In this document: in pieces, positions 5,237 to 60,750 of the stretch
Numbering within the stretch: position 1 is the first letter of the stretch
Layout of the letters: the number at the start of each line of letters is the position of its first letter
DNA from: Octopus bimaculoides
Taxonomy: Eukaryota
Length of the DNA stretch: 64,000 bases
NCBI RefSeq assembly: GCF_001194135.2
Contig: NC_068982.1
Location: forward strand, 6,307,114 to 6,371,113
Direction: 5' to 3'
Made by a program: the position numbers and the translations under genes
Notes under the pieces: model-generated
The model's input: only the letters and a program-made list of their open reading frames with translations
The model's database searches: none
Told to the model about the DNA's origin: nothing

Positions 5237-5384
5237 CAGGTTTTATTTCAAGATTTCTTGCTAATATCCTAGATCCAAGGCTCCCCTCATTGGAATTTCA
5301 ACAACATCAACAGGGTATTTTTGTATGTATACGTGCAGATTTATATGCTTTGTTTTATGTATGTACCTTCATTCATGTATGTAT

Positions 5385-6002
5385 CTTGGCGATCTTGGGC
5401 GAGGAAACATTCAAGAAAACCGACTGGATTTGCTTCAAAAAGTGCCAAGTTCACCTGCGACATGACCAGCCTGGTGTGCTTTTGATCCGGCGTCAAAAGT
5501 TGTGGCACCAACCGAGCTGAAACCTTCGACATGCCAAGTTCGTTATGCAAAATGTTCTCAATTCGTTCACGGGAGATGCCTACAGTATTAGCTATCTGAT
5601 TAACATTTAAACGTCTGTCATTCATCACCATGTGGTGAACACGGTCGATGTTTACTTGGGTGGTGACTGTGGCAGGACGTCTGGACCTTGGGTCATCTTC
5701 AATTCAGCTGCCCACTTTTGCATAGTTGATAATACTGGAACTTCAACCCCTAATGTCCTTGGGGGCTAACCCCTTTTTCTGCAGATATTTCGTAACATCA
5801 CGGTGCCAAATTTTATCCATTTTCACGAAATGTCTCTAGTACCAGTTTCCCAAGTCCTCAATTCCGTATCCAATGTGGGTTTTTCTAGAACGAAAACATA
5901 CATTTAGCATCAGTAAAGATTGAATTTAATGCATGCCAAGTTTAATTACTGTATGATAATTCTTTCATAGTCATCCTATGATCTTTCCAGCCCACCCTAG
6001 TA
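5385..6002 (-). mobile_element. Mariner transposon 5' half: TIR plus N-terminal transposase with internal deletions (pseudogene)
   Basis: ATG at 5820: MDKIWHRDVTKYLQKKGLAPKDI, then DDPRSRRPA, MVMNDRRL...ELGMSKVSARLVPQLLTPDQK (WVPxxL linker motif). Truncated before the catalytic domain. TIR-like ta-ctagggtgggctggaaag at about 5983-6002. Confidence 0.92.
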
Positions 6003-12211: not shown

Positions 12212-12654
12212 CAATAGTGACTACATGAATACCACTATCACCTATTATTCTCTTTAAATTCCTTTCATTTCACTTTATTCTGTTTACTTTGTTCTTTTTA
12301 CATTATCTTACTTTACCTCCTCTCTCCTTATTTACCCTTATATGTTTATTCATTTATTTATCTTCTTGGTTATTTTTATACACTATGTTCTTAGACGCTA
12401 TATCTTTATATACCTTATTTTATCCTTAACGCCAATCCTTAATTTCCTCCCTCACTCTCTCTACTCCTAGTTCTAATTACTCATTTTTCTTTCTTTTTAC
12501 CACTTAATAGCCATTCTGCTACCATTCTGTTATTGAACGTTGATATGTTCGTGTCTGTTTCTGGATATTTACACTATCAGAACTTTAACCTACATGGATT
12601 TACATAGGATTGCACCTAAGGACTTTTGGACTTACTTCTATATGTTATTTACAT

Positions 12655-12857
12655 AATTTACATTTGATGGATATTTGTCCGCCTTTTGTTTGTTGTTAAC
12701 ACAACGTTTCGGCTGATATCCTCTCCAGCCTTCACCAGGTGTCATGGGAAAATTTTCAACCGGGGTTCTCATTCCTAAAGTATTTTAGATCTTGTTATTA
12801 TTATTATTATTGAGGTCACTGCTTGGAATCGAACTCGGAATCTTGGGGTTAGTAGCC
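12655..12857 (-). mobile_element. SINE-like family D (tRNA head, AAT tract, HHR-bearing tail), head 5'-truncated
   Basis: Matches copies at 24112, 44319 and 59243; the HHR core reads CUGGUGA (A6G). Confidence 0.88.
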
Positions 12858-21919: not shown

Positions 21920-24111
21920 NNNNNNNNNNNNNNNNNNNNNNNNNNNNNNNNNNNNNNNNNNNNNNNNNNNNNNNNNNNNNNNNNNNNNNNNNNNNNNNNN
22001 NNNNNNNNNNNNNNNNNNNNNNNNNNNNNNNNNNNNNNNNNNNNNNNNNNNNNNNNNNNNNNNNNNNNNNNNNNNNNNNNNNNNNNNNNNNNNNNNNNNN
22101 NNNNNNNNNNNNNNNNNNNNNNNNNNNNNNNNNNNNNNNNNNNNNNNNNNNNNNNNNNNNNNNNNNNNNNNNNNNNNNNNNNNNNNNNNNNNNNNNNNNN
22201 NNNNNNNNNNNNNNNNNNNNNNNNNNNNNNNNNNNNNNNNNNNNNNNNNNNNNNNNNNNNNNNNNNNNNNNNNNNNNNNNNNNNNNNNNNNNNNNNNNNN
22301 NNNNNNNNNNNNNNNNNNNNNNNNNNNNNNNNNNNNNNNNNNNNNNNNNNNNNNNNNNNNNNNNNNNNNNNNNNNNNNNNNNNNNNNNNNNNNNNNNNNN
22401 NNNNNNNNNNNNNNNNNNNNNNNNNNNNNNNNNNNNNNNNNNNNNNNNNNNNNNNNNNNNNNNNNNNNNNNNNNNNNNNNNNNNNNNNNNNNNNNNNNNN
22501 NNNNNNNNNNNNNNNNNNNNNNNNNNNNNNNNNNNNNNNNNNNNATATATGCATGTATGCATGTATGTATGTACACATACATACATTTATTATATTATAT
22601 ATTTATTCACTTTTTCTCCTTTCTAAAAACTAAAAACCTGGTACCGAGATGATTTATATTTCTAGAAAATTTCTATAGTATTTATTTCGTAAATTTATTA
22701 GAACGTTTTTATTTTAGGTCTTACTTAACATATTTAGTGAAAAGTTTATCACTTTAGAATTTGAACTTATGATGTTTAACTTCGTAGCCCAATATAATCA
22801 CCAAGCATCGCACATTACACGGCCATTATATCACTTGAGATCATCAAATTAGTTTTATTTTTGGAACGATTTGTGTTTAACCTCATCAGGTATTGCTTTA
22901 TCGTGATTTTGTTTGTGAAACAATTTCATTTGCTATAATGTTCGTCACTAATGAGATACGAAGATGTATAATCTCTGGGGACCTCCTAATAGATTTTAAC
23001 CTCAGGCTAGAGATTTAAAACAGAAAAAGGAATATCTGGAGATAAAATGGACTGAGTGAATAATTCTGTTTCAGTATTTCACCTTCAATTCACAGCAATC
23101 AAGAACGCATATCGGAACCTCGCACTCCTAAATCAGAATTGATTGTTTTCTGCATTCTGAGTCCTAATTAGCTATTTGCTTCCGACTCATAATCGTTACG
23201 ATCATTTGTGGCTCACTCTTCAGATCTCAAGCAGAGATGAGCCAAAACGTGTCAAAACGTTTCTTACAAAACCTCTATTTGCTATGAATTTTCTCAAAAA
23301 ATATCAATTAATGTAATCTTTCAAACCATTATATTGAATCGACTGATTTTGTGAAATTACAAAACTTTTTGTACAACATTTCAATTTATGATTGATTTGT
23401 TGTTGATTAGGCTAAACTATACCCAGTTGATCATTACCACATCTTAATAAAAAAAAATTACTTGAGATTACAGCTTCATAAAATGATTTGCAACGTCTTT
23501 GAAATATTCTTCATACAAACAATTTTCAATCTAACAAAAGTGTCTTAACTAAGTTAGAATGGATTTTATTACTTATTGCCATCAATAAACTTTCATTTGA
23601 GCGTATACATTCCTCCTTCCTCCGTTGTTAAAGCCTGAGTAGGCTAGAGTAAATTTTGAAGCAATTGTTTAATATAAGTCTTAAATTACATTTATATTTA
23701 TTTCACTTACTATCTGTAAACTTTGCCTTTTACATTAAAATATTCGGATTAAATAATGCAATCGGAACTTTTCTCTAATTCGGCCGCTTAGTACGCTTAT
23801 GTTTTTTTAGATTTGTCAGCATTAAAATAACTAGAGTTTTTATTATTTTTAAATTCATTCGAAGCAAAAGTAAAACGATGGCACGACAAAAGTGACTCTA
23901 GCTTCAGCAGTGAATCTACTAAATTTGATAGCTCCTTCTTCGATTTCGAAGATGAACACTCAGTTGTTCGATTAACTGAAGTACATAATCATTAAAATAG
24001 GTTGTAAGTGACTGAGTATTCCAAAGACATATTTAGCGTTTCCATAATTCTAGGCCGAATCAGCATAAGTTTGAACACAGGTCGAATCTGTGCGACAAGT
24101 ATCAGTGCTAC

Positions 24112-24356
24112 ATTATTTACATTTGACGGATATTTGTCCTCATCTTGTTTGTTGTTAACACAACATTTTGGTTGATATACCCTCCAGCTTTCATCAGGTG
24201 TCTTAGGGAAATTTCGAACCTGGGTTCTCATTCCTAAGGTATTTCTCGATGATGATATTATTATTATTATTATTATTCAGGTCACTGCCTGAAATTGAAC
24301 TTGGAATCTTGGGGTTAGTAGCCCGCGCTCTTAACTACTACGCTATATGCCTGTGG
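24112..24356 (-). mobile_element. SINE-like family D, full head plus tail
   Basis: Head reverse complement ccacaggcatatagcgtagtagttaagagcgcgggctactaaccccaag; HHR at 24157-24202 with G12A and C15.2U changes. Confidence 0.9.
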
Positions 24357-24369
24357 GTAATTATGGAGT

Positions 24370-24571
24370 GAATAATAATAACAATAACATCGAAAAATAC
24401 CTTAGAAATGAGAACTCAGGTTCGAAATTTCTCCGAGACACCTGATGAAAGCTGGAGGGTATATCAGCCGAAACGCTGTGTTAACAACAAACAAGATGAG
24501 GTCAAATATCCATCAAATGTAAATAATGTACATAATTTCTCATCTCTTAAATATAGAACTGAAGTATCAGC
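24370..24571 (+). mobile_element. Family D tail without head, inverted relative to the adjacent copy
   Basis: AAT/AAC tract, then catcgaaaaataccttag...gacacCTGATGAaagctggagggtatatcagccGAAAcgctgtgtt (HHR 24437-24482). Confidence 0.9.
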
Positions 24572-25249
24572 GCTGTTTCCGTCCAAGGATTTTACTCACA
24601 AGGACTGGGGAGACCTGAGGCTAGGGTTTAAAGTTATCGTGCAGTGGGATCGAACGCTACATCTCTTGACTGTGTTTCTAAATTTGTAACCACTGGGCCA
24701 TACCTGCGTCCACTGTACTGAATGCACAATAAAAGAAAAAATAAGAAATAAGAAAAGGACAAGGGTACATTAAAATGTAAATTCATCCCAAAAAGACAGT
24801 GAGAGAGAAGGAGAGAAAGTGAGAAAGAGAAAGAGAAGAAGAGAGAGTGGGAGAGAAGGAGACAAGGGGAAGAGAGAGATACAGAAGAATTCAAAGGAAG
24901 AGGGTAAAGAATGGCACTTTGATCATTTTGCTCTCTAAAAATTTCTGTTCAAGTTTATTTATATTGGAAATGTCTATTTTTTCTTGAGAACTTATTCAAT
25001 AGAATAAGACTGCTCAATCTGCATTCATTCAGAATGCTTCTTTGATCACTGAAAAGAAATCCTTTTGAGAGATAAAAATCATTGCTTGCCATTGCAATTA
25101 GTTACCAGAAAAACCAATTCCATTACTTTAGTGACCTCAACATTAGGAAAACAAGATTTAAAGTTATTGAAAACTCCTGGTCATCTTGATCACTAAAAGC
25201 GATCCAAAATATAACACAATTGCAGAAAATATTTTCTTTATTCCTGTAA

Positions 25250-39084: not shown

Positions 39085-39400
39085 ACGTGGCTAAGTGGTA
39101 AGGGCATTCGGCTCACGACCGTATGGTCATGGGTTCAATTCCTGGCGACGCATTGTGTCCTTGAGCAAGACACTTTATTTCACGTTGCTCCAGTTCACTC
39201 AGCTGGCAAAAATGAGTAGTACCTGTATTTCAAATGGCCAACCTTGTTACATTATGTGTCACGCTGAAGTTCCCAGTGAACTACGTTAAGGGTACACGTG
39301 TCTGTGGAGTGCTCAGCCACTTGCACATTAAATTCACGAGCAAGCTGTTCTGTTGATCGGATCAACTGAAACCCTTGTCGTTGTAACCAACGGAGTGCCA
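39085..39400 (+). mobile_element. SINE with family C 3' half but a different tRNA head and central segment
   Basis: gtggctaagtggtaagggc A box and gggttcaattcc B box, then tgtgtccttgagcaagacacttt...; joins family C sequence at gtacctgtatttcaaa (~39218). Confidence 0.85.
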
Positions 39401-43921: not shown

Positions 43922-44318
43922 TAATTACATGTATTATGTACCTATATACCACCTCACAAAATATTTCAGCTTTCTGATTTGCGAAAGTTAATAAAACCCC
44001 TTCTGGCAAATAGAAGCAGATCATATCGATATCCTGTGGCAGGCAACGTGTTAATAACATAAGGGACATGTAAATGGTATATGTTGATTGATATATAGTT
44101 TTTAATTAATCTGATAGGATGCAAAGCGTCTATCCGGGTTAATGTTTTGTTTTGTTTCTTGGATTTTTTTTAGATGTTGAAGAGTCGTTAATATAATGTG
44201 AAATGATCGTGTGGATATTTAAACACTAATTCAAGGATTGTATGTTCCCTGGAAATACTTTTAATGAAAAGCTGAAGGAAAACAGACAGAGAAACCAGAG
44301 TTATTATCAACGCTATAA

Positions 44319-44393
44319 CCACGGGCATGTAGCGTAGTGGTTAAGAGAACGGGCTATTAACCTCAAGATTCCGAGTTCGATTCCAGGCAGTGA

Positions 44394-44473
<80 letters not shown>

Positions 44474-44722
44474 GTCTCTTGAGGTCTCTGGGTGAGACTT
44501 GGATCCAACTTGTACAAATGCAAAACAAAAGTTAAACATAAAATAATAATAATAACAACAACAACATCGAAAAATACCTTAGGAATGAGAACCCAGGTTA
44601 GAAATTTCCCCAAGACACCTGATGAAGGCTAGAGGGTATATCAGCTGAAACGTTGTGTTAACAACAAACAAGATGAGGAAAAATATACGTCAAATATAAA
44701 TAATGTAAATAATGTACATAAC
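44319..44722 (+). mobile_element. SINE-like family D, complete copy with extra ~70 bp module
   Basis: tRNA-like head 44319-44397 (A box tagcgtagtgg, B box gagttcgattcc), (AAT)25, module 44473-44540, tail with HHR 44614-44659. Confidence 0.92.
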
Positions 44723-44734
44723 TATTTGTTGTTC

Positions 44735-45083
44735 ATGTAACATATGAAGTTTGCTTCCCACATAGATCCTGACTCAGTCCCACTGCATGGTACCTTGGAC
44801 AAGTGTCTTTTTACTATATCCCCGGCCGACGAAAGCCTTATAAATGGATTTGGTAGGCAAAAACTGAAAGAAGCCCATCGCATACGTGCGCGCGCGTGTG
44901 TGTCTTTGTGTTTGTGTATTTACTCCTCCGTAACTTAGTGGTTCGGCAAAAGAGACTGCTAGAATAAGTACCTGATTTAAAAAAATAAATACTTTGTCGA
45001 TTTATTCGACTAAGATTCTTCAAGGTAGGGCTCCAGCATGGCCGCAGTCTAATGACTGAAACAAGTAAAAGATAAAAGATAAG
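44735..45083 (+). mobile_element. SINE family B variant
   Basis: tcagtcccactgcatggtaccttggacaagtgtc...gctccagcatggccgcagtctaatgactgaaacaagtaaaagataaaagat. Confidence 0.85.
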
Positions 45084-58778: not shown

Positions 58779-59242
58779 GACGATATGTGGTACTTATTGA
58801 TTCACTGATTGCTTCCTTAAATCAAGATACGATAATAACTCAGAGTAAATGTTTATCAAGTGATATTTCTTTCTTCCACCATGATATGACCTTTATCATG
58901 AACTGAAATATTTCTCCGTTTTCTGTAAATTGTGAACACATCACCTGATGACTGGATGCTCAGCTAATTGTTAAGCATTTAATGGTAATTTCATATTAAT
59001 TACGTCGCACATCACATCATTCTGAATCAGCTGTTTTCCAATTACATTAACAGCCAAATAATATACTCGTTCATTCAATAGTCAACTTGCCTTAGGTATT
59101 TGCCTTTTTGTTTATCAGTTGCAATCAATCTCTTTACATACGTCATTACTTGTAGTTCCGTTGTTCAAGTGGCAGATTTCAAGAACTTGTTTTCAAATTT
59201 ACTTTTCATTAGATTCCAGACCATTTCAGATATAAAGAACCT

Positions 59243-59387
59243 TATTTACATTATTAACGTTTGATGGATATTTGTCCTCATCTTGTTTGTTGTTAACACA
59301 ACGTTTCGGCTGATATACCCTCCAGCCTTCATCAGGCGTCTTGGAGAAATTTCTAACCTGGGTTCTCATTCCTAAGGTATTTTTTGA

Positions 59388-59421
<34 letters not shown>

Positions 59422-59500
59422 TTATGTTTGACTTTTGTTTTGCATTTGTACAAGTTGGATCCAAGTCTCACCCAGAGACCTCAAGAGACAACAAGTTAGA
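59243..59500 (-). mobile_element. SINE-like family D (extra-module subtype), head hidden in gap
   Basis: Tail, AAT tract and the same ~70 bp module as at 44473; runs into the N gap. Confidence 0.9.
59295..59340 (-). ncRNA. Putative minimal type I hammerhead ribozyme with intact catalytic core
   Basis: Minus strand: GACGC-CUGAUGA-A-GGCUG-gaggguauau-CAGCC-GAA-ACGU-U|GUGUU. Stem I 5 bp (2 G-U), stem II 5 bp, palindromic ACGU stem III, GUU cleavage triplet. Activity untested. Confidence 0.75.
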
Positions 59501-60241
59501 NNNNNNNNNNNNNNNNNNNNNNNNNNNNNNNNNNNNNNNNNNNNNNNNNNNNNNNNNNNNNNNNNNNNNNNNNNNNNNNNNNNNNNNNNNNNNNNNNNNN
59601 NNNNNNNNNNNNNNNNNNNNNNNNNNNNNNNNNNNNNNNNNNNNNNNNNNNNNNNNNNNNNNNNNNNNNNNNNNNNNNNNNNNNNNNNNNNNNNNNNNNN
59701 NNNNNNNNNNNNNNNNNNNNNNNNNNNNNNNNNNNNNNNNNNNNNNNNNNNNNNNNNNNNNNNNNNNNNNNNNNNNNNNNNNNNNNNNNNNNNNNNNNNN
59801 NNNNNNNNNNNNNNNNNNNNNNNNNNNNNNNNNNNNNNNNNNNNNNNNNNNNNNNNNNNNNNNNNNNNNNNNNNNNNNNNNNNNNNNNNNNNNNNNNNNN
59901 NNNNNNNNNNNNNNNNNNNNNNNNNNNNNNNNNNNNNNNNNNNNNNNNNNNNNNNNNNNNNNNNNNNNNNNNNNNNNNNNNNNNNNNNNNNNNNNNNNNN
60001 NNNNNNNNNNNNNNNNNNNNNNNNNNNNNNNNNNNNNNNNNNNNNNNNNNNNNNNNNNNNNNNNNNNNNNNNNNNNNNNNNNNNNNNNNNNNNNNNNNNN
60101 NNNNNNNNNNNNNNNNNNNNNNNNNNNNNNNNNNNNNNNNNNNNNNNNNNNNNNNNNNNNNNNNNNNNNNNNNNNNNNNNNNNNNNNNNNNNNNNNNNNN
60201 NNNNNNNNNNNNNNNNNNNNNNNNNNNNNNNNNNNNNNNNN

Positions 60242-60318
60242 ATATCAGCCGAAACGTTATGTTAACAACAAACAAGATGAGGACAAATATCCGTCAATTG
60301 TAAATAATGTAAATAATA
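60242..60318 (+). mobile_element. Family D tail end, inverted relative to 59243-59500
   Basis: atatcagccgaaacgttatgttaacaacaaacaagatgaggacaaatatccgtc immediately after the gap. Confidence 0.88.
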
Positions 60319-60364
60319 TGATAATTCCAAATGTCTTAAAATTAAAACTGTATTATATAAAGAA

Positions 60365-60539
60365 CCGAAATTTTGGGAGAGGGTGCCAGTCGATTAGAGC
60401 GACCCCAGGACGCTAGTGGTACTTAATTTATCGACTCTGAAAGGATGAAAGGCAAAGTCGACCTCGGCGGAATTTGAACTCAGAACGTAAACACAGACGA
60501 AATACCGCTAAGCATTTTGCCCGGCGTGCTAACGTTTCT
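60365..60539 (-). mobile_element. SINE family A lacking its 5' ~20 bp
   Basis: Reverse-complement copy cut at gctaacgtttct by the next element. Confidence 0.88.
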
Positions 60540-60750
60540 TATTTCCTTATTGCCCACAAGGGGCTAAACATAGACGGAACAAACAAGGACAGACAAAGGG
60601 ATTAAGTCGATTACATCGACCCCAGTGCGTAACTGATACTTAATTTATCGACCTTGAAAGGATTAAAGGCAAAGTCGACCTTGAACTCAAACGAATTACC
60701 GCTAAGCATTTCGCCCGGCGTGCTAACGTTTCTGCCAGCGCGCCGCCCTT
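60540..60750 (-). mobile_element. Family A head/body with a different tail and internal deletions
   Basis: Tail reverse complement ccctttgtctgtccttgtttgttccgtctatgtttagccccttgtgggcaataaggaaataag. Confidence 0.85.

Follow-up and report, generated by a model that had tools for sequence, protein, structure and literature searches.

Is the hammerhead motif encoded on the minus strand near position 59,300 of this stretch a self-cleaving ribozyme that serves its own locus, or a passenger of a mobile element, and in the latter case of which kind of element? The stretch, referred to as the window, comprises 64,000 nucleotides (nt) of the Octopus bimaculoides contig NC_068982.1 (positions 6,307,114 to 6,371,113, assembly GCF_001194135.2), and all coordinates given here are positions within it. 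An initial annotation made from the letters alone had described the motif as a catalytically intact-looking hammerhead. Based on direct reading, descriptor scans, structure prediction and comparisons to published systems, we propose that it is probably a minimal type-I hammerhead such as those found in the pseudo-long terminal repeats of Penelope-like elements (PLEs), located in the 3' module of a composite octopus short interspersed nuclear element (SINE) with an RNA polymerase III (Pol III) head. The copy at this locus, denoted c59, is a neutrally decaying, dispersed one that has retained the motif by chance.

Read directly on the minus strand from 59340 to 59295, the motif is 5'-GACGC CUGAUGA A GGCUG GAGGGUAUAU CAGCC GAA ACGU U GUGUU-3', with the following parts.

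59295-59340, minus strand: minimal type-I hammerhead of c59 (direct reading, descriptor scan, folding and the Poseidon_Ac control described below)
59340-59336, minus strand: 5' strand of helix I, GACGC (direct reading)
59335-59329, minus strand: core nucleotides C3 U4 G5 A6 U7 G8 A9 (direct reading)
59328, minus strand: extra unpaired A between A9 and G10.1 (direct reading)
59327-59323 with 59312-59308, minus strand: helix II, GGCUG paired to CAGCC, with a 10-nt loop and a possible sixth G.U pair
59307-59305, minus strand: G12 A13 A14 (direct reading)
59304-59301, minus strand: palindrome A15.1 C15.2 G16.2 U16.1 (ACGU), which forms helix III in trans only
59300, minus strand: U17 of the GUU cleavage triplet, with the predicted cut at 59300|59299
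59299-59295, minus strand: 3' strand of helix I, GUGUU (direct reading)

The conserved core C3 U4 G5 A6 N7 G8 A9 / G12 A13 A14 / A15.1-U16.1 / H17 is complete in c59 according to both the reading and the descriptor scan. The initial annotation had thus rightly reported all catalytic nucleotides and a 5-bp stem II, and the cut that it predicted on the minus strand is correctly placed with respect to the motif. It had passed over the unpaired A 59328 in its description of the core; the equivalent nucleotide is an A in all five complete copies of the window, and a pyrimidine is implied there in a further O. bimaculoides copy represented by the protein entry A0A0L8FV75 (see below). Helix I of c59 comprises five base pairs (G-C, U.G, G-C, U-A and U.G), where position 2.2 is G 59337 instead of the A of the family majority, converting a U-A pair to a U.G wobble. 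The G10.1-C11.1 pair joins G 59327 to C 59308, as in the majority of the family. The three helices of a hammerhead do not form within one c59 molecule, as the loop-less, 4-nt ACGU helix III does not close in cis. This had been raised beforehand as a caveat, together with the GUU triplet, the lack of a same-strand tandem partner and a competing GUUG...CAAC hairpin; all four are borne out, the third by BLAST and TRF, which detect no such partner for c59 in the window, and the fourth by folding.

As far as its sequence tells, the c59 motif is a real, intact hammerhead of the known "minimal, dimer-only" PLE type. The minimal hammerhead ribozymes (min-HHRs) of PLEs are type I, without a helix III loop, and combine a helix I of 4-5 bp with a long helix II (Cervera & De la Pena 2014, PMC4209133). 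The 5-bp helix I of c59 lies within this range, and its helix II, 5 bp and one G.U, at the low end of 6-8. For evaluation against chance, a strict descriptor was used. It called for CUGANGA with at most one extra nucleotide, a helix II closed by G10.1-C11.1, GAAA, a palindromic helix III lacking a loop, U16.1, H17 and a helix I, with neither helix I nor helix II shorter than 4 bp. The motif of c59 is its sole match in the window, and none arose in 2000 dinucleotide-preserving shuffles. With a relaxed descriptor c59 and a second copy, c44, are matched, against 30 matches in 2000 shuffles, while the simpler pattern CTGATGA-N(8-38)-GAAAC occurs three times in the window against 0.21 expected. As a positive control, the Poseidon_Ac unit junction from the supplement of PMC11167929 was scanned with the relaxed descriptor; Poseidon_Ac, from Anolis carolinensis, has a hammerhead with C3/G8-dependent cleavage (PMC11167929). 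Its sequence, CCU CUGAGGA U GCCUGC-loop-GUGGGC GAA ACGU C AGG, is detected with the parameters of c59, helix III being ACGU and the number of extra nucleotides one.

Rfam, in turn, reports no hammerhead match across the entire window at the gathering score, and no hammerhead model is matched at E<=10 around c59 and c44. The curated hammerhead families of Rfam are types I, II, III, HH9 and HH10. The lack of a match is expected, because these models need a helix III hairpin. It nevertheless speaks, along with the lack of covariation among the copies, for a mere chance resemblance to a hammerhead within the repeat. We consider such a coincidence extremely unlikely, given the strict descriptor's zero matches in 2000 shuffles and a family consensus whose minimum free energy (MFE) structure consists of the hammerhead helices. 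In addition, the extra nucleotide between 9 and 10.1, the G10.1-C11.1 pair and the ACGU palindrome match published PLE hammerheads, an experimentally cleaving one among them.

The motif belongs to a repeat. Comparison of the c59 neighbourhood with the window by BLAST identifies six copies of a ~150-nt module, in which the hammerhead lies on the sense strand of the SINE, ~60 nt from the 3' end. The copies and associated modules are arranged as follows.

59239-59394, minus strand: c59 copy of the ~150-nt 3' module, a short form without 3' extension
59388-59425, no strand assigned: (AAT)n/(TAT)n microsatellite between the central and hammerhead modules
59422-59489, minus strand: 68-nt central module (GTCTCTTGAGG...CATAA), common to c59 and c44 only
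60242-60317, plus strand: c60, a partial copy, inverted (head-to-head) relative to c59 across an assembly gap, with G1.1A
44316-44715, plus strand: c44, a full-length composite SINE, hammerhead at 44614-44659 with G10.5A and C11.1U
24109-24359, minus strand: c24a, with head, (AAT)n and hammerhead module, no central module and the short 3' form; hammerhead at 24157-24202 with four lesions
24370-24570, plus strand: c24b, 5'-truncated and inverted; hammerhead at 24437-24482 with G10.1A and U16.1C, and a 3' extension TTCTCATCTCTTAAATATAGAACT...
12645-12857, minus strand: c12, with 5'-truncated head, (AAT)n and hammerhead module, no central module; hammerhead at 12698-12743 with A6G at 12735 and loop changes

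The lesions that had been listed for the copies other than c59 are real, although two of the lists were incomplete. The copy at 24157 carries G12A as stated, but as one of four changes (G10.1A, 11.3 G>A, G12A and C15.2U) rather than as a single lesion, and in the copy at 44614 G10.5A was missed beside C11.1U. For the copy placed at 12655 the A6G change stands (12735), whereas the coordinate does not, the hammerhead being located at 12743-12698. The pairs of changes in the copy at 24437 (U16.1C and G10.1A) and the stem I lesion at 60242, which is G1.1A, were found as described. An origin of several lesions as CpG-type transitions holds for C11.1U, G12A and C15.2U, but these are just 3 of about 11.

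The repeat is a composite SINE, in which a head with Pol III boxes is followed by (AAT)n, in some copies by the 68-nt central module, and by the ~150-nt 3' module; the initial annotation had recognised neither this nature nor the published PLE type of the motif. In c44, the Pol III head (44316-44398, box A at 44330-44340 and box B at 44373-44384) is followed by (AAT)n, the central module (44474-44541), (AAT)n(AAC)n, the hammerhead module and a (ATGTAAATA)n tail. The ~80-nt head is found three times in the window, each time upstream of a hammerhead module on the same strand and joined to it through (AAT)n. Box A (TAGCGTAGTGG) is perfect and box B (GAGTTCGATTCC) near-perfect, 32 nt apart in c44, and the same is seen in c24a. 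No T4 terminator run is present on the sense strand of the SINE. The modules seem to have been shuffled or deleted at the (AAT)n tracts.

In the c59 module, ATCGAAAAATACC ... precedes the hammerhead, which is followed by an AC-rich stretch, a GAUGAGGA/UCCAUC stem-loop and the (ATGTAAATA)n tail. The stem-loop GAUGAGGA-CAAAUA-UCCAUC (59262-59281, minus strand) and its equivalents, downstream of the AC-rich stretch, are well conserved, and an A/G polymorphism in it (CAUC/CGUC) keeps the pairing as either U-A or U.G. Upstream of the central module of c59 lie 11 nt of unrelated DNA (TCTAACTTGTT, 59490-59500) and then a gap of 741 N (59501-60241), while the module is preceded by (AAT)n in c44 (44399-44473). 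On the other side of the gap, c60 continues into a ~40-nt 3' extension, to about 60355, that is similar to the extension of c24b.

Searched against 5.8 billion proteins, the translation of the hammerhead module in its open frame has a single match, A0A0L8FV75 from O. bimaculoides (UniRef, 51 aa, 86% identity). This 'uncharacterized protein' (A0A0L8FV75_OCTBM) is evidently the translated hammerhead module plus 3' extension of another copy, and hence probably a spurious gene model. Neither the hammerhead pattern nor an invariant 23-mer of the module has an exact match in metagenome, viral and prokaryotic genome collections.

Whether the intact state of c59 reflects selection was assessed by counting substitutions against the family consensus. 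The hammerhead has accumulated 13 in 252 positions (5.2%), its upstream flank 21 in 242 and its downstream flank 20 in 321 (flanks 6-9%). At 5.2% per site a fraction of ~0.17 of copies keeps all ~33 constrained positions, which predicts about one intact hammerhead in five, and one is observed among the five complete copies, that of c59. Decay of the hammerhead thus keeps pace with that of the flanks, so that a single intact copy out of five is in line with chance and no sign of selection.

Folding separates c59 from its family in another respect. In the isolated 46-mer the hammerhead helices reach -10.8 kcal/mol versus an MFE of -12.2, and in contexts of 76, 156 and 251 nt the MFE structure is not the hammerhead; forcing helices I and II in these contexts costs 6-7 kcal/mol, and the hammerhead pair probabilities are ~0. 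Two hairpins compete with it.

59320-59346, minus strand: upstream competitor hairpin CUCCA-AGAC-GCCU-GAUGA-AGGC-UGGAG (folding)
59289-59302, minus strand: second competitor hairpin GUUGU-GUUA-ACAAC, nearly invariant in all copies

The upstream hairpin (59346-59320) ties up the CUGAUGA box and the 5' strand of helix II and is strongest in c59, while the second (59302-59289) sequesters G16.2, U16.1 and U17, i.e. the cleavage site, together with the 3' strand of helix I. For the majority consensus of the family the hammerhead helices are themselves the MFE structure (a difference of 0), whereas the hammerhead fold of c59 lies 6.0 kcal/mol above its MFE. The difference arises because T 59345, which c24b also has, and G 59337, which no other copy has, complete the upstream hairpin, which likely would also form first during transcription, as it lies wholly 5' of the 3' strand of helix II. 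For two 46-mers, the domain-swapped double hammerhead is predicted at -19.9 versus a dimer MFE of -29.2 kcal/mol, the latter using an 8-bp intermolecular duplex (with G.U) at the loop II quasi-palindrome GGUAUAUC (59312-59319, minus strand). In this model the quasi-palindrome could either help or compete with dimerisation. With these two substitutions and no same-strand partner, c59 is expected not to cleave as a monomer and to cleave weakly at best in trans or as a dimer.

A ribozyme maintained by selection for self-cleavage at this locus, for instance in the processing of a host transcript, would account for all core nucleotides and both helices being intact in c59 only, and for a single change in helix I that keeps pairing as G.U. 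We nevertheless judge this highly improbable. About one intact copy among five is expected by chance, neither a helix III in cis nor a same-strand partner is available, the changes particular to c59 tip folding away from the hammerhead by 6 kcal/mol, and single min-HHRs show no detectable cleavage in vitro, with dimers and trimers cleaving only weakly (PMC4209133). The description 'catalytically intact-looking' is therefore appropriate for a genuine motif with all its catalytic nucleotides, but overstates the c59 locus, because of the min-HHR architecture, the missing same-strand partner, the competing fold, the flank-like decay and the lack of an Rfam match. More generally, copies with an intact sequence can be fold-incompetent, as predicted for c59, and hammerhead censuses should score the flanking context too.

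How, then, are the copies mobilised? Insertions of PLEs are frequently 5'-truncated and show an inverted, 5'-truncated copy adjoining the 5' end (Craig et al. 2021, PMC8557442), and further hallmarks are a 'tail' extension of 30-40 bp that is often one-ended, a bias towards microsatellites and resulting assembly problems (PMC8557442). The tail has been put down to two adjacent internal start sites of the reverse transcriptase (RT), and has been termed unique to PLEs (PMC11167929). In the window, c24b starts in (AAT)n, inverted, ~10 nt from the 5' end of the full-length c24a, and c59 and c60 face each other head-to-head across the 741-N gap. On the 3' side of c24b, the flank TTCTCATCTCTTAAATATAGAACT... 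recurs in the independent O. bimaculoides copy A0A0L8FV75, and matches that of c60 at 20 of 26 positions, beating all 300 shuffles with gentle scoring; a search with stringent scoring detected no flank homology beyond the 3' tail, the extension shared by c24b and c60 having emerged with the gentler one. In c24a and c59, their respective partners, the short tail is the last part of the module and no extension follows. The head-to-head pairs, the 3' extension in one arm, the (AAT)n tracts and the assembly gap fit PLE-type integration. If transcribed through, the pairs at 24109-24570 and 59239-60355 would form double-stranded RNA hairpins of ~150 bp, potential substrates of RNA editing or RNA interference.

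Genomes of octopuses are rich in tRNA-SINEs and in long interspersed nuclear elements (LINEs) of the RTE and CR1 groups, with Penelope elements present as well (PMC8967140). The repeat could be a common tRNA-SINE that depends on a LINE partner of the CR1, L2 or RTE type, its hammerhead-like segment being a secondary acquisition or a relic without relation to mobilisation, and its pairs resulting from a local insertion preference. The dominance of such elements in octopus genomes (PMC8967140), the resemblance of the tandem 9-mer tail (ATGTAAATA)n to LINE/SINE tails and the lack of a PLE open reading frame (ORF) in the window are in line with this, yet we regard it as unlikely. An inverted, 5'-truncated copy with the 3' end in both arms is a PLE hallmark (PMC8557442), while twin priming by a LINE inverts an internal segment without duplicating the 3' end; as a source of the inverted pairs it was rejected, both arms carrying the same 3' module. 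Moreover, extension of the 3' end on one side only has been called unique to PLEs (PMC11167929), and the motif shares min-HHR features that lie outside the rationale of the search descriptor (PMC4209133). Mobilisation by a PLE enzyme is consequently favoured, on the grounds of inverted pairs with the 3' end in both arms and of the one-sided extension.

On this basis we tentatively propose that the repeat is a true 'PLE-SINE', a Pol III-headed retroposon with a 3' module copied from a PLE, hammerhead included, and moved by the RT/GIY-YIG enzyme of a PLE rather than by a LINE; this is possible, if somewhat short of probable. The SINE would be transcribed by Pol III from its head, and its 3' module, mimicking the 3' region of the partner PLE, would be used by the RT/GIY-YIG enzyme for target-primed reverse transcription. 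The observed insertions are in part 5'-truncated, paired head-to-head in inverted orientation or extended at the 3' end, and they are associated with microsatellites. An active site would arise only when the ACGU palindromes of two copies pair, giving a domain-swapped double hammerhead as in published PLE ribozymes. By the same analogy, cleavage after U17 would yield ...GAAACGUU>p, with a 2',3'-cyclic phosphate, and a ~60-nt 3' fragment starting with 5'-OH GUGUUAAC. Hammerhead mutants have no effect on PLE insertion in vitro (PMC11167929).

Several observations weigh against the assignment to a Pol III-headed SINE with a PLE-type hammerhead and PLE-based mobility. Across helices I and II of the five copies there is no compensatory covariation, just one-sided changes or breaks. 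No tRNA is called in the head by ARAGORN, nor is the head matched by the Rfam tRNA model at E<=10, so that the label 'tRNA-derived' draws on the promoter boxes only. Nearest-neighbour energies leave out the tertiary contacts of hammerheads, and accordingly indicate poor folding competence of c59 without proving inactivity. The 3' extension is seen in three or four copies only, and no target-site duplications are discernible by eye around c44 and the c24a/c24b unit. Short tandem tails like (ATGTAAATA)n are also typical of SINEs moved by LINEs of the CR1/L2 type. Finally, the ORF listing and Pfam, which give just one weak helix-turn-helix match, contain no RT or GIY-YIG ORF in the window, so that PLE dependence is deduced from insertion architecture only.

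Should the repeat be a PLE-SINE, PLEs would be driving some of the SINE expansion specific to octopuses, and what the PLE enzyme recognises or processes would include the hammerhead region. The ~150-nt module would then offer a compact substrate on which to establish the recognition requirements of this enzyme and any role of the hammerhead in mobilisation. One more intact min-HHR copy in itself changes little, as thousands per genome are known in many animals.

The remainder of the window contains further repeats and remnants. Heads with box A and box B that belong to other SINE families are present at the following positions, exemplified by GGCCCAGTGGTTAC...GCGTTCGATCCCACTGC and TGGCTAAGTGGTAAGG...GGGTTCAATTCC, and a remnant of a different type lies near the start of the window.

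24590-24720, minus strand: box A/B head of another SINE family
39088-39142, plus strand: box A/B head of another SINE family
5341-5631, minus strand: 96-aa ORF with a weak helix-turn-helix Pfam match

The 96-aa ORF resembles the N-terminal, DNA-binding portion of a mariner/Tc1-type transposase and seems to be a remnant of one. Repeats at 44760-44900 and 60350-60700 (ccttggacaagtgtct...ggatttggtaggc... and ggtgccagtcgattaga...gtcgacctcggcggaatttgaactcagaacgt) presumably resemble very abundant octopus SINEs. Twelve N gaps, totalling 3689 N and mostly bordered by microsatellites or repeats, interrupt the window, and all 'ORFs' of more than 200 aa are artefacts that span them.

The min-HHRs of PLEs are one of the closest known systems. 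They number thousands per metazoan genome and are mostly solo, with some pairs 100-700 bp apart on opposite strands (PMC4209133). Like them, c59 is of type I without loop 3 and has palindromic positions 15.2-16.2, an unpaired nucleotide between A9 and G10.1 and a G10.1-C11.1 pair; the octopus motif further shares a helix I of 4-5 bp, an occurrence as dispersed single copies and opposite-strand pairs, and the expectation of activity as a dimer only. It differs in being located in the 3' module of a Pol III-headed short element without pseudo-long terminal repeat or RT/GIY-YIG ORF, in its GUU cleavage triplet and, compared to the Schistosoma PLE families with their helix II of 7-8 bp, in a helix II of 5-6 bp.

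The agreement with Poseidon_Ac extends from CUGANGA, the one extra nucleotide, a helix II of ~6 bp, GAAACGU and H17 to the surroundings of the motif, where both elements have an AC-rich stretch and stem-loop downstream as well as two alternative 3' ends tens of nucleotides apart. The octopus stem-loop GAUGAGGA-CAAAUA-UCCAUC loosely recalls the AC-rich stem-loop where the RT of Poseidon_Ac initiates. Poseidon_Ac is, in contrast to the octopus SINE, autonomous, with an ORF that starts inside the ribozyme, C17, a contiguous helix I of 3 bp and no Pol III head, and its cleavage has been measured.

Animal non-LTR retrozymes (PMC7229834) resemble the octopus SINE in being small, AT-rich and non-coding, in their type-I hammerhead and in their proposed PLE dependence. 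Accordingly, the repeat could be conceived as the solo unit of such a retrozyme, giving rise to circular RNAs by hammerhead cleavage at both unit ends, and the unit size (~150-400 nt), the low GC content and the hammerhead type, along with the proposal that retrozymes are PLE derivatives (PMC7229834; bioRxiv 10.64898/2026.07.22.740005), are compatible with that. Retrozymes, however, are head-to-tail tandem arrays that give circular RNAs, whereas no head-to-tail tandem copies exist in the window, where TRF reports the (TAT)n tract only. They also lack the Pol III head of the octopus SINE, and the hammerheads of invertebrate retrozymes are canonical, with a stable helix III (PMC7229834). We thus see little chance that the repeat is a retrozyme unit.

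Close counterparts are also Sm-alpha and Sj-alpha of schistosomes, SINE-like hammerhead elements (Ferbeyre 1998, Laha 2000, reviewed in PMC6765202). The octopus SINE shares with them the build of a short, non-coding retroposon in which a Pol III promoter precedes a type-I hammerhead encoded on the sense strand. The Sm-alpha hammerhead is nevertheless canonical, with a short helix III and loop, often tandem, and cleaves in vitro, whereas the octopus motif is loop-less and minimal, its copies being dispersed or in inverted pairs. Published precedents exist for minimal PLE hammerheads, for short derivatives of PLEs that are non-autonomous (PMC6685494, PMC8557442) and for SINE-like elements, such as Sm-alpha, that combine a hammerhead with a Pol III promoter. 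No description of a Pol III head combined with a loop-less PLE motif and PLE-style insertion signatures in a cephalopod was found in the searched literature, and this combination is somewhat new. In this context, the octopus element would represent a clear-cut natural example of a PLE being parasitised by a SINE, and the cephalopod counterpart of schistosome Sm-alpha.

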